From: Fimbriosthenelais zetlandica
Taxonomy: Eukaryota
Direction: 5' to 3'
Length of the DNA stretch: 64,000 bases
Assembly (NCBI GenBank): GCA_977030845.1
Contig: OZ365112.1
Span: 12,834,001 to 12,898,000, forward strand
Shown: positions 6,401-12,400 of the stretch, piece after piece
How the letters are laid out: each line of letters starts with the position of its first letter
How positions within the stretch are numbered: the first letter of the stretch is position 1
Made by a program: the position numbers and the translations under genes
The notes under the pieces: model-generated
What the model was told of the DNA's origin: nothing
What the model saw: only the letters and a program-made list of their open reading frames with translations
The model's database searches: none

Positions 6401-9400
6401 TATTTGTATTTCGTCTATATCTATATCAGATTCTAAGATACAAGTCGATGACAAACTTATACAAACTGGTAGTTCAGTAATAAAAGGTAATCAAGAATAT
6501 AATAGCACAGTAACATGTGTTAAAATTGTCAGGTAATGAAAATTTATAAGGACATACTTCTGTCAACAATAGTGAAGACTTCGAGTACAGCAGGCGCGCC
6601 TATACCCAGCTTGGTACGAGCTGAGACCCTGAACACATAGTATTTATGTCTCTGTAGATGACTGATGCTGAGGTCCCGGGCATTAGGACCTAACCCATCC
6701 TCCTCTATAGCGAAGTCAGGGCCTTCAGTCTTCTCATAGTAAGCCACGCTGTAACCTGTGATGATTCCATTAGGTTCCTTAGGTGGACTCCACACCACTA
6801 GTACTGTACTGTAGGTGACATCAGGGAAATACACACTGCTTGGAGGTCCGGGTACTGGAAAAGAAAATTATGATGAACCGTCAATGATTGAATATCAAAA
6901 TTCCCTTCAGTATTACTCAGGGCCACCCTAGACTAGGGGGTCAATATCAAATGAAATTTTTTTTTGTCCTCAATGATTAGAGAAATCCAAAGGTTACAGA
7001 ACAAAACATTTCGTAGTTTGTATCATAATACAAAAAAGGACACTCACCATCCTCAAATGTTTTCACTATAGGAGCCGGGCTGCTGAGAGCTCCATCTCCT
7101 ATGCGGGTATAGCCCAGCACCTGGATCCTGTATTGAGTGTATTTCTTCAGGCTCGTCAGTATAGTCTCCCTGGCCAGGCTGGTGTTCACATCATTCACAG
7201 ACGGCTCTAACCAAGGCATGTTAGCTATACTGTAGATGACCTGGTGGAAAATAGAAAATAAAACTTAATATTTTCAGGAATTTTTCAGATAGGTGAAAGG
7301 AAGGAAGAAATCTTTGAAAATTATGAATGAAAATCTATGAAGATATTAGCAATGTACCTTGAAGCCGAGTAGTTTGCCGTTTTTATGCATCTCGGGTATA
7401 TCGGACCATTGTACACGTATGGAGGTAGAACTGAGAGCTGTAGCGTTGATTTTAGCTGGACCCTGACTGGGCACTGACTCACGGGTCCTGTCTGTGGCTA
7501 TAGTACTGTACTCACTAAAGCCCACCTTGTTATAGGAGGCTACACGCACATCATACTCAGTCCACTCCTCTAGTTTAGTGAAGGTATAACTATTAGCGTT
7601 CTCATTTCTGATCTCTATAGTTGTGATGAAGTGGCTGGCACTGTGCTCTTTATGCTGGATGAGGTAACCTCGACCCTCACCATTCCACAAGTCAGAGGCC
7701 AGAGGCTGCAACAAGGAAAACATTATTATTCAAAATATCTCAATGGACAATAGTTCAATGGTGCTTTATTTTATATCAATTTTTTATATCAGGACTGTAA
7801 ATAAAAACCCCAAAATATACACAATTGATAATCCTGTTAAATAGCTTAATTTGATTTTTTAAATATGAATGTAACTGCCTAATAAATTATGCTAATTTCC
7901 AGGATCATAACAATATAATCTCATTGATTTAATTGTTAATTTGTACTGATCATTTCATTGATTTAATCGTTAATTTGTACTGATCATTTCATTGATTTAA
8001 TCGTTAATTTGTACTGATCATTTCAGCCACCCACCTTCCATCGTACACGGATGGCCGTCTCATTGTCCGCCCTGACTGTCACCTCAGATGGCGGGCTAGA
8101 TGGCTCAGCTTGGATGGTTTGGAAGCTCCGTGTGGAATCACTGGGCATACTGCGGCCTGCCACATTCTCTGCTAACATCCTCAATATGTAGTTAGTATAG
8201 GGCCTCAGACCAGTCACCTCTAATGAGGTAGCCTCAGGTGCTGTCTTCTCAAAGATCACCATCCATTCATCGTCAGTGTTAATCTGGGCCTCAATAACCC
8301 ACTTGGTAATGGAGGTGTGGCCAGAGAATCCTGGTATAAACTGTACGAGTACAGAACTCGCCTGGATGTTGGTGATGGCCAGATTACGAGGCGGAGCTGG
8401 GCGCTCTGAGAAAAATAGACAAGATCACTGTAAACATAGTCCGACAGTAAATATCATTAGACTTAATATAGGTAAATTTCCACTTATTTTTCTCTTATGA
8501 TCTTCAATTATGAAACTTTAGGCATGACGATTTGTGTAGAAGAGTATTGTGCAGTGTACTGATAAAGCATTTTGGTATTCATTTTTATAAATGTTGGTAT
8601 ACGAATAATTTGTAACCCATACATAACACCAAATATATATTACTAGGGGTTTTGCTATAACAGGGGGAATTGAGCACAAAAACATTTCTAGGACAATTTA
8701 CAGAACAAGGGACAATTCATGTAACAATGTGAATGACAATGAACTTGAGCATTTTACTAAACAATTGAACATTTGAACATGAAACTTTCTATGTGTGAAC
8801 CTTACCAACTATAGTGAAGTGTGGCAGAGAGAAAATTCATGGACAGTATAATTAGTACAGAGAGATATCAAATATATAAGACAGATGAAGACAAGTCAAT
8901 TTACAAGAGAAGTGCAGAACATTGTGATATAGATTTTACGGAACTATTTTTGTACACTTTTAGAGCAAGAATAGTTGGAGAAAACAGGACGACAAACGGT
9001 ACCTAATACAGAATGATCATTCAAAAGACATCCACTAAGACATACCTTCATAAATAGACAAATATTAATATTTCTTGGCATATCAATTTGAGAATATTTA
9101 CCTGGGGGTACACCTGATCCTATGTCGGCAGATCTGAGGGGACCAGCGCCCACCCGTGTCTTAGCGAAGACCTCTATGGTGTAGGTGGTGGTAGCCGTGA
9201 GACCGGTAATGGTGTAGTTCAGGGTGGTGGGTGATAGGTCCACACTCACTTTTGAGATGGTTTCATTCTTCCTCATGTAACTCAATGTGTAACCTACAAA
9301 TACATATCACAATATCCATTATATTTTAGTTCAACAATCAACAAATTTAACCCCTTTTTGGTTATCAGAATTACAATATAGATGTATAATTACTTACCAA

Positions 9401-12400
9401 TAAGGATTCCGTTTATATGTGGTGGAGAGGTCCACATGACTTGAAGAGAGGTATCCAGAACATTATCAAACCAGAGCATTCCAACCGCATCAGGAACTGT
9501 GAGAAAAGGGAGTATGGTTTATTGAAAATTGAGTAAAAGATCGAAGAAACTACATCTTTAACCGCTGTCCCATTCAATATTGAACTTTGAAGATTTATTC
9601 TAAGAACCATTAATAAAGGAATTATATATTTTACTTACCATCCTCCATGGTTTTGACTGAGACAGGAGGACTCGAGGGACCATCGCCTTTACTGGTGAAG
9701 CAGAGTATACGGATCTGGTAGTTGGTAAACTTGTGGAGGTGGTAGAGGTTGGCCGTCTGTTCACCTAACATGTTAGCCGTGTCTGATGGTATGGTCACCC
9801 AGATCTCTGACCCACTCTCACCGTCTACCTTAGCTTCAATCTGTTCAAAAATGTACAAAATCATTTTAAAATTTTTGATCAAGAAATATAACCCATAGCA
9901 TAGCCCAGAGCAAATTATATTCTTTCCTGTGCATATTCCACAGCATTTTCTTTTACGGATTTAGATATTTTAAAGTTATTTGTTTAATCTTAGGTAAAGA
10001 CGGTCAATGCGACTAGATGCGCTTTACATAATTATTTGACCCACCTTGTAGCCTTGGTTAATACCGTTGATGTACTGAGGACTGGGAGGGATCCACCTGA
10101 TCCGGATGCTGGTTGAGTTGAGAGCGGTAGCTGACACTTTTTTCGGAGCTTGGGTTGGCTTTCCTTCCATAGTTCGAACGTAAATAGTTGAGCTATAAAC
10201 CTGTAATGAAAACAAGTAAGATTTCTAACACTGTAGATAATTCAATTGGAGGGCGATACCTACATAAACGTCCTAGCCCAATATCACTCAATTGGAGGGC
10301 GATACCCACTTAAATGTCCTTGCCCAATATCATTCAACCGGAGGGCGATACCCACATAAAGGTCCTAGCCCAATACCATTCAAATGGAGGGCGATACCCA
10401 CATAAAGGTCCTAGCCCAATATCTTTCAATTGGAGGGCGATACCCATATAAACGTCCTAGCCCAATATCATTCAAATGGAGGGCGATACCCACATAAATG
10501 TCCTAGTCCAAGTCTAGTTTAGATCAAAAATAGACCTGCCCCTGCTCACTGACTATATACGAGATGCCTTACCCCTACACCTTTCCTGTTATAGGCAGCT
10601 GTAGCTATCTCATACTCCTGGAAGACGATCAGACCCTTGAGTTCATACATCTCCCGTAGCCGGCTGGTAATGTTCTCATAGGTGAGAGTTTCATCAGGAT
10701 AGCCTGACGGCTTGAAGCGGATAATGAAGCCTTGTAGAGGACCGTTCCACTTGTCTTCATCTGGAACTTTCCATCGTAGAATGATGGAGGTCTCAGATCG
10801 CGGACTGCCGACTACATCACGAGGTGGTCCACTGGGTGCTGTATGGAAATCAAATTACATTTATATTCAATTTTGCCTCTGATAGGAGTCAATATTGCAT
10901 TTGACCTTGAAAACTGTTCTCATTTCAGAAACTCAGTATTCAACATTCAAACACTTGCTGAAAAGCTTTCATTAAATAGATTACTTCATGCATAACTCAT
11001 GAAGACACTAAGTGAACTCTGGATAGCAAACATCATGTTACTACTGAGGTATTTGAGTAATTTAGTATAGAGAACTTACGTTGTTGAGGTAGGGTAACAG
11101 TCTGGCTTGGTTTGCTGCCCATACCTTCACCTACATCATTGACAGCGCTAACACGGAACTGGTAGGAGCGGGCAGGCAGTAGGCGAGGTACAGTATAGGT
11201 CATCATAGAGGCTGGTACCTGATCATTAGATACCACCCAACCTTCACTGTCTAATAACTCAGTACCTGCAAGAGACAGACAAGTCACTTAAATACCCAGA
11301 TCAAAATTTACAAATAGTAGTTACAACAAGGCAAATAAATGGGTTAAAAAGGTGAGATATTGCCATTTGAGGTCAGGCCAAAAGCAGTGATGCTCAATTG
11401 ACTGCGTAGAAAAATGCATAAAATATGCATACAAATGCATTAATTTCATTTTACAGACCAATGCCAAAAGCTTTTGTATATCCGATAGAATGCTCTTTTT
11501 CAATTGAAGGATTTGAAAGATGGATGCTTGACTGAGGCAAAATGGACAGAGATGCACAAGATCCAAGCCAAAATTTTAACAGATTATGAACCGTGCAAGT
11601 AGTGGTTGAAACGAAGCTACAAAATGATGTGCAAACTACTGGAGCCAAGCCAGACAACATCAAAATTAATACACATAGAAAAAGAAATGTAGATGAGAAT
11701 ATCATGCATTATTTAGAGAAGCATTTGAACAGCACCCAACAGAGAGACAGGAGTGGCAATTGCTTCTGAAAAGAATCGTCGGTTATTTCTGCCAGAATTT
11801 TTGACAAGTTTGCAACAAAAGGTCTTGAGAGATTCCTTGTGGTGTCTTCCAGGGTGACTATCTACTTTTTTAGGTACATCGACCAGACAGGTGGAGCCAA
11901 ATAATAGTTATAAATGAAGTAAAGAAAGAAAAATAGAGAAAGCAAAATGATGACAACATAATATACGGGGCCAACACAATATAAAATAATTTATAAATCA
12001 ACCAAACTGGGTTGCAGGGAGTGGCCAAAATCCACTAATAAACCTACCCATGAGGATCTGAGGCACTGCAAGAATCAACTAAAATGTTACTCTCTCACCC
12101 GGCATTTAATCTAAATTATATGCTTAATTCTGGATCCAGAGCAAAATTAGATATACAGTGCATTATATAATAATCAACTACGGTAGGTGAAGTTAGAGTT
12201 GATATCATTCCACGTGATACATTAGGTTTGTATGAGTACAGTGCAACTAGGCATAACCAACTGTGTCTTGCAACGTATTCAGATACGGATATTATACGTA
12301 AGGGTTATTAAATTATATTAAGAAGCATTAAATGAAAGTGATTTGCCCTTTTTGAGGAAATAAATCAAGTGAAAAATGTCAAAATGTATGTACAGAGGGT

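Follow-up and report, generated by a model that had tools for sequence, protein, structure and literature searches.

Neural microexons governed by the eMIC domain (of SRRM3 and SRRM4, and of Srrm234 in invertebrates) are 3-27 nucleotides (nt) long, preserve the reading frame, and are inserted at surface or linker regions of the products of neuronal adhesion genes. According to Torres-Mendez et al. 2022 (PMC8797185), four features mark such exons in flies and mammals alike: a long AG exclusion zone, a UGC near the 3' splice site, a tract rich in UCUC and a strong CUAAY branch site. Exons of only 3 nt are also documented, among them the AAG exon of NCAM, the exon of Drosophila troponin-T (TnT) and the extra-Gly exon of cytohesin-1, all single-codon cassettes which add one residue and change hinge or binding geometry (PMC8042270, PMC6314551). 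Here we examine a candidate of this kind, the trinucleotide TTG within an intron of a Sidekick gene, in a 64,000-nt stretch of Fimbriosthenelais zetlandica DNA (contig OZ365112.1, positions 12,834,001 to 12,898,000; hereafter the window, to which coordinates refer unless stated otherwise). An earlier reading of the same stretch, the original prediction, had proposed it as a 3-nt microexon adding one valine to the linker between the domains FN3-4 and FN3-5, and was right that such exons are an established kind. We lean towards a different view, namely that the TAG-TTG-GTAAGG unit is an intronic pseudo-exon which, judging from its sequence and setting, would not be spliced. Since four relatives lack the unit, we rank an unused look-alike as somewhat more likely than a real microexon.

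The candidate shares with eMIC microexons their size range, frame preservation, UGC, UCUC, AG exclusion zone and CUAAY motif, as well as the neuronal adhesion host gene and the linker position. However, members of the eMIC programme are usually conserved within a clade, whereas the TTG unit is not conserved in the four relatives compared here. Like the NCAM, troponin-T and cytohesin-1 exons, TTG would be a single-codon cassette; those exons were found in cDNA and validated experimentally, whereas the Sidekick TTG is a prediction from sequence. With intronic pseudo-exons, or decoy pairs, it has in common the average strength of its sites, a decoy-level density and a chance-level 3-nt spacing, but its auxiliary signals (branch site, UGC, UCUC, AG-free zone and YCAY motifs) outnumber those of the other decoys in the 528 kb of background sequence.

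According to the pseudo-exon reading, ordinary unselected intron sequence would happen to look like an acceptor and a donor separated by 3 nt. The spliceosome would normally ignore the TAG-TTG-GTAAGG unit, and the host intron (9101..8406) would be removed in one step to give the canonical linker SGVPP-E-RPAPP, as in every known Sidekick. Weighed together, the average sites, a decoy density equal to expectation, the non-conservation of the unit, the invariant linker, the post hoc nature of the features and the many parallel proposals argue for such a chance origin.

Protein searches for the FN3-5 exon returned no relative above 72% identity, and the nearest sequences were metagenome or genome contigs with 52-72% amino-acid (aa) identity in that exon. 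The AG-TTG-GT unit, for which the original prediction had looked to a conservation peak in related genomes, was not found there: a comparable AG-NNN-GT unit is absent in 4 of 4 relatives with a complete orthologous intron, although these relatives are distant (58-72% aa identity in the flanking exon). The sole AG-NNN-GT sites in their introns are weak, namely TAT in L009 (acceptor -3.9, donor 1.2) and AAT in L007, whose inclusion would introduce a stop, and the introns of 91 nt (L010/L006/L011) and 107 nt (L007) are too short to accommodate an internal exon. At this distance the introns are unalignable, even between L001 and L009 with their 80% identical exons; therefore, the comparison shows only that the unit is not ancestral. 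Apparent blocks shared by the window intron with L001 and L009 (CATTGTCATTCAC.. and TAATATTTGTCTATTTATGAA) were not significant, as 25-48 of 300 shuffles scored equally.

The linker itself, SG[VI]PP-[E/V/L]-x-P, aligns without gaps in some 40 representatives of Sidekick clusters from across animals, and likewise in every fragment from the relatives, the transcript-like P0114 and P0150 included. No Sidekick protein in the comparison has an extra residue at this place, and the Lingula RefSeq isoforms X1-X4, all four full-length or nearly so, show no difference at the FN3-4/FN3-5 linker. This bears also on the idea that the TTG exon is constitutive and that the protein always reads SGVPPVERPAPP. 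The signals are present, and nothing further speaks for it; the linker is shorter in every homologue (P0114, P0150 and the roughly 40 full-length Sidekicks) and the outer splice sites are stronger, which makes this idea hardly credible. A literature search gave no support for a microexon here, finding no paper that connects Sidekick with one, and the only splice variants mentioned in a Sidekick review are ones without Ig domains.

We scored splice sites with position weight matrices (PWMs) derived from the 30 donors and 30 acceptors of the gene itself, with leave-one-out for the real sites; the 30 introns, 23.2 kb in total, were modelled from the tblastn chain described below. With a score of 6.28, the candidate acceptor falls at the 37th percentile of real acceptors (mean 7.28 +/- 3.05); the candidate donor, at 6.37, falls at the 33rd percentile of real donors (mean 7.47 +/- 2.15). 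Both sites are usable, not strong, and the strong splice sites of the original prediction were thus overstated, as both score below the median of the gene's real sites. The outer sites of the host intron rank higher, the donor at the 70th percentile and the acceptor at the 63rd, and consequently skipping is the default outcome. Sites weaker than the flanking constitutive ones would also be expected of a regulated exon, and to this extent they fit a microexon.

As background we used 528 kb of strand-sequence, comprising the window and 200 kb from elsewhere on the same chromosome. Decoys that score at least as high as the candidate sites turn up on average every 614 nt for acceptors and every 473 nt for donors. 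With independence assumed, 1.8 pairs spaced by 3 nt are predicted in the 528 kb, and 2 were observed (the candidate and one in L016), a rate of about 0.19 per 55 kb gene strand. The pattern YAG-NNN-GTRAG with 13 or more pyrimidines out of 19 arose in 9% of dinucleotide-shuffle trials of the gene's introns, and a given 3-mer flanked by AG..GT in a 696-nt intron has a chance probability of about 4% (MicroExonator formula, PMC7821500). In the window, YAGNNNGTRAG occurs 12 times, compared with 6.75 +/- 2.6 in shuffles; the frequency of an AG followed by NNNGTRAG is 0.0023. Judged by its splice sites alone, the candidate is an ordinary decoy pair. A second AG-NNN-GT unit (AAA) lies 20 nt downstream on the minus strand, at 8788-8786; its poor scores (acceptor -2.9, donor -4.5) illustrate how common the bare motif is.

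To judge from its Ig and FN3 domains, the collinear tblastn chain to the Owenia fusiformis sidekick and the other full-length relatives named sidekick, the host gene on the minus strand of the window is the Sidekick orthologue of a spiralian, probably an annelid. I-set and fn3 Pfam domains lie in the exons of this large Ig/FN3 gene, and the chain covers residues 64-2019 of the 2198-aa Owenia 'Protein sidekick' at 40-68% identity per exon. Further close full-length relatives are the sidekick proteins of Lingula, Mizuhopecten and Potamilus, and the domain order, Ig first and then a long FN3 array, is collinear with that of named Sidekicks. Near window position 366 the chain stops, having reached Owenia residue 2019 out of 2198, and the last coding part of the gene thus lies outside the window or at its edge. 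Sidekicks end in a PDZ-binding GFSSFV motif.

The host-intron junction corresponds to Owenia residues 1047/1048. FN3 units begin near residues 640, 737, 841, 943 and 1048, and the assignment of the site to the FN3-4/FN3-5 linker is thereby borne out. The coding sequence runs ...GTA CCC CCA G up to 9102, followed by gtaaat, and resumes after ctcag with AG CGC CCA from 8405. As the original prediction had stated, the intron is phase 1, and in the frame of 9101..8406 inclusion of TTG would read G-TT G-AG (Val-Glu), turning SGVPP-E-RPAPP into SGVPP-V-E-RPAPP with the frame kept and no stop. The predicted exon-exon junctions are CCCCCAGTTGAGCGCC with TTG and CCCCCAGAGCGCC for the canonical form. 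The host intron is G-poor (14% G) and 3.5 times as long as the gene's median intron; at the candidate exon it would split into sub-introns of 293 and 400 nt, a normal size for this gene. Coordinates of these features, and the orthologous introns of the relatives, are collected in Table 1.

Table 1. The candidate TTG exon and its surroundings in the window, with the orthologous introns of four relatives
Feature	Coordinates	Strand	Basis or score
Upstream coding exon, second half of FN3-4; ends ...SGVPP + G (phase 1)	9102..9293	-	Pfam fn3; tblastn, Owenia residues 974-1047; splice model
Host intron, 696 nt, phase 1, GT..AG	8406..9101	-	Splice model
AG-free zone upstream of candidate acceptor; preceding AG at 8945-8944, 135 nt from candidate AG	8811..8943	-	
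Branch-point-like motif TACTAAT, contains CUAAY; branch A at 8852, 43 nt upstream of acceptor G	8851..8857	-	
Pyrimidine tract ttttctctctgccacacttcactat; alternating UCUCUCU directly followed by UGC (TGC at 8826-8824), 14/19 pyrimidines	8812..8836	-	
Candidate acceptor AG, context TAG-T	8809..8810	-	PWM score 6.28
Candidate 3-nt exon TTG, would insert one Val	8806..8808	-	Predicted from sequence
Candidate donor GTAAGG, context TTG-GTAAGG	8800..8805	-	PWM score 6.37
Five YCAY motifs downstream of candidate donor	8729..8798	-	8798-8795, 8782-8779, 8742-8739, 8736-8733, 8732-8729
Downstream coding exon, FN3-5 and start of FN3-6; begins AG CGC CCA (E-R-P-A-P-P)	8035..8405	-	Pfam fn3, 4.7e-16; 58.5% identity to Owenia residues 1048-1170
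Orthologous intron in L001, 286 nt; linker SGIPP-V-Q-PEPP			
Orthologous intron in L009, 411 nt; linker SGIPP-V-Q-PEPP			
Orthologous intron in L010 (= L006, L011), 91 nt; linker SGIPP-E-K-PGPP			
Orthologous intron in L007, 107 nt; linker SGIPP-E-K-PGPP			

Every element of the layout described in the original prediction (TACTAAT, UGC in the tract, AG-TTG-gtaagg, exon 8806-8808) is present on the minus strand, with small corrections to positions. The branch motif lies 1 nt away from the claimed 8850-8856, at 8851-8857, and all five YCAY motifs claimed for 8730-8798 exist, except that the last one (8732-8729) straddles 8730; three of the five are packed within 14 nt (8742-8729).

Several of these findings speak against a chance pseudo-exon and in favour of its strongest competitor, a real, lineage-specific alternative microexon of the neural type that depends on an eMIC factor (Srrm234), which we regard as possible and hold tentatively in second place. 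In neurons, such a factor would bind UGC/UCUC upstream of the acceptor and aid U2 recruitment at the distal TACTAAT. TTG would then be included against the stronger outer sites, perhaps with a Nova-type factor on the YCAY cluster, and would be skipped elsewhere; inclusion would add one Val to the Sidekick FN3-4/FN3-5 hinge. The host gene is a neuronal, synaptic adhesion gene, the position is an inter-domain linker, the insertion preserves the frame without a stop, and the two sub-introns would be of normal size in place of one enlarged intron. The resemblance of the upstream region to SRRM4/eMIC targets is stronger than had been claimed, with all four published cis-features present (PMC8797185): a UGC at -18..-16 of the acceptor, directly after UCUCUCU; a 135-nt AG-free zone; and TACTAAT with its branch A at -43. 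The size of 3 nt in phase 1 lies within the 3-27-nt, frame-preserving range. The full combination, which we defined as YAG-NNN-GTRAG with a pyrimidine tract, CTAAY, UCUC, UGC and at least 40 AG-free nt, did not arise in any of 1500 dinucleotide shuffles of the gene's intron sequence (23.2 kb), and 0.0003-0.005 cases per gene are expected from real background DNA.

Against a microexon stand the absence of the unit from four relatives, two of them with introns of 91-107 nt, and the fixed length of the linker, as described above, and also the way in which this combination was arrived at. Its thresholds were chosen post hoc, with the candidate already known. Moreover, 48 microexon candidates had been proposed from sequence across the 447-Mb genome, and the Sidekick TTG was picked as the best of its gene, which introduces a selection effect. 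Scaled to 894 Mb of strand-sequence, chance gives about 7-86 full-combination sites, perhaps 1-13 of them in sense introns. Given the post hoc thresholds, the 48 parallel proposals and this genome-wide expectation, a chance origin stays entirely plausible.

The auxiliary signals differ in how rare they are. TGC is found in 23% of 25-nt background windows and in 23-26% of AG contexts, and a UCUC hexamer in 2% of AG contexts. At least five YCAY per 70 nt occur in 2.4% of background windows, and tight YCAY triples (within 100 nt) accompany 7% of random sites and 2 of the 30 real donors. Taken singly, the UGC and YCAY extras are each unremarkable. TACTAAY occurs in 0.4% of 43-nt background windows and in none of the gene's 30 real introns, 6 of which have CTAAY. 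An AG-free zone of the candidate's length precedes 0.17% of background AGs; since 11% of shuffles of the G-poor host intron reach a run of at least 135 nt, this feature is in part an effect of composition. The strict four-feature architecture (with CTAAY) was met at 7 of 32,347 background AGs, and a looser one (without CTAAY, UCUCUC hexamer required) at 22 of 32,330. At most one of the remaining six strict cases, and perhaps none, lies at the start of an evident coding exon, which suggests that eMIC-like architecture alone is a poor predictor of a real acceptor. We also noted an AG with an eMIC-like layout at 30043-30041 on the minus strand (CTAAT, UCUC, UGC, 75 nt AG-free, acceptor 6.8). It sits upstream of the first modelled Sidekick exon and is followed by a 68-codon open frame without evident homology, with a good donor at +198.

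Two further findings from the same genome likewise count in favour of a microexon rather than a pseudo-exon. A Pfam SRRM_C match (PF15230, the eMIC region of SRRM3/4) at G000:C11:15909256-15909330 (L035) scores 31.8 bits against a cut-off of 27. The match spans model positions 31-55, within an open frame of 53 aa, and we regard it as a candidate for the animal's Srrm234 eMIC exon. In addition, a predicted 24-nt beta-spectrin microexon (G000:C11:6176292-6176314; L036 1440-1535) is preceded by the tract UCUCUCUC, a UGC at -7 and a 53-nt AG-free zone. Like the Sidekick candidate, it thus combines a UCUCUC tract and then UGC with at least 50 AG-free nt; the beta-spectrin exon lacks a CTAAY branch motif, whereas the Sidekick candidate has one. 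On the basis of this layout and the SRRM_C match, an eMIC-type programme using such cis-signals plausibly operates in the animal, which raises the odds for the Sidekick candidate, but this is a single example. An ACC/CAC-rich run (ccaccaccaccaccaccac) starts 10 nt after the donor of the beta-spectrin microexon.

The mid-intron position of a good branch site, tract and donor, in an intron 3.5 times the gene's median, also fits a third possibility, in which the unit binds splicing factors as a decoy or pause site and influences how the host intron is removed, for instance through stepwise removal of a longer-than-usual intron or by regulated intron retention, with no stable +3 mRNA. We consider this very unlikely. 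The unit is not a zero-length recursive site, since 3 nt separate AG from GT and no 5' splice site is regenerated when splicing uses the AG. Introns known to use recursive splicing are far longer than 696 nt. Nor did we find conservation, a special RNA structure or an Rfam match that would point to such a role: shuffled sequences fold as well as 8720-8880 does (z = 0.15), and no hidden RNA gene was detected in 7600-9700 (no Rfam match at E <= 1).

Other explanations were also rejected. A recursive splice site is excluded by the non-adjacent AG and GT and the short intron, and an origin from a repeat or transposon by the host intron being single-copy in the genome. A longer cassette sharing the candidate donor meets a TGA at 8839-8837 in its upstream frame, with no other AG between, and one sharing the candidate acceptor meets an in-frame TAG within 7 codons downstream, the sole other nearby GT giving 8 nt.

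The Sidekick TTG is therefore best described as a well-formed, unverified candidate, and even if real it is a further case of the known 3-nt and eMIC-type microexons. Were it used, it would provide a one-residue switch in a hinge of fixed length in Sidekicks across animals, and the added Val could re-orient the FN3 stalk in a subset of neurons. It would also give Sidekicks their first reported alternative microexon and illustrate the birth of a microexon inside an enlarged intron. As a lineage-specific spiralian microexon with the full set of eMIC signals, it would bear on the growth of neural microexon programmes. If, as we favour, the unit is an unused pseudo-exon, then a site with every textbook microexon signal can be one of the few that a 447-Mb genome should contain by chance. 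Because a full signal set can arise in this way, sequence-only microexon calls, such as the 48 for this genome, need support from RNA or conservation.

Other variation was seen in the same gene and its relatives. A 34-nt unit is repeated 3.1 times (98% matches) at 7921-8025, about 10 nt past the donor of the exon 8405-8035, in the next intron. The FN3-5 exon itself carries an extra intron, after ...[KQ]GQ-gtaag, in the distant relatives L006/L010/L011, L007 and L032 (positions 462-481 in L006, 833-1040 in L007 and about 3984-3988 in L010). It is absent from the window (8405-8035), L001 and L009, and was thus gained or lost within the clade.

The one-residue difference between Lingula anatina sidekick-2 isoforms X1 (2184 aa, P0156) and X2 (2183 aa, P0026), which we considered as a possible linker insertion, is actually an exon swap in FN3-10; the two isoforms differ only by an exchanged block of about 100 aa. 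The window has two alternative FN3-10 exons on the minus strand, 4911-4678 and 4166-3924, at the place that matches this swap. Since the pair is already annotated as isoforms in a brachiopod, the mutually exclusive FN3-10 exons are probably ancient in Spiralia. Finally, at alignment column 1842, Lingula sidekick-2 X3 (P0157) lacks 10 residues (GELDNQVQHF) relative to X1, a difference that corresponds to a cassette of 30 nt; this part of Sidekick is membrane-proximal.

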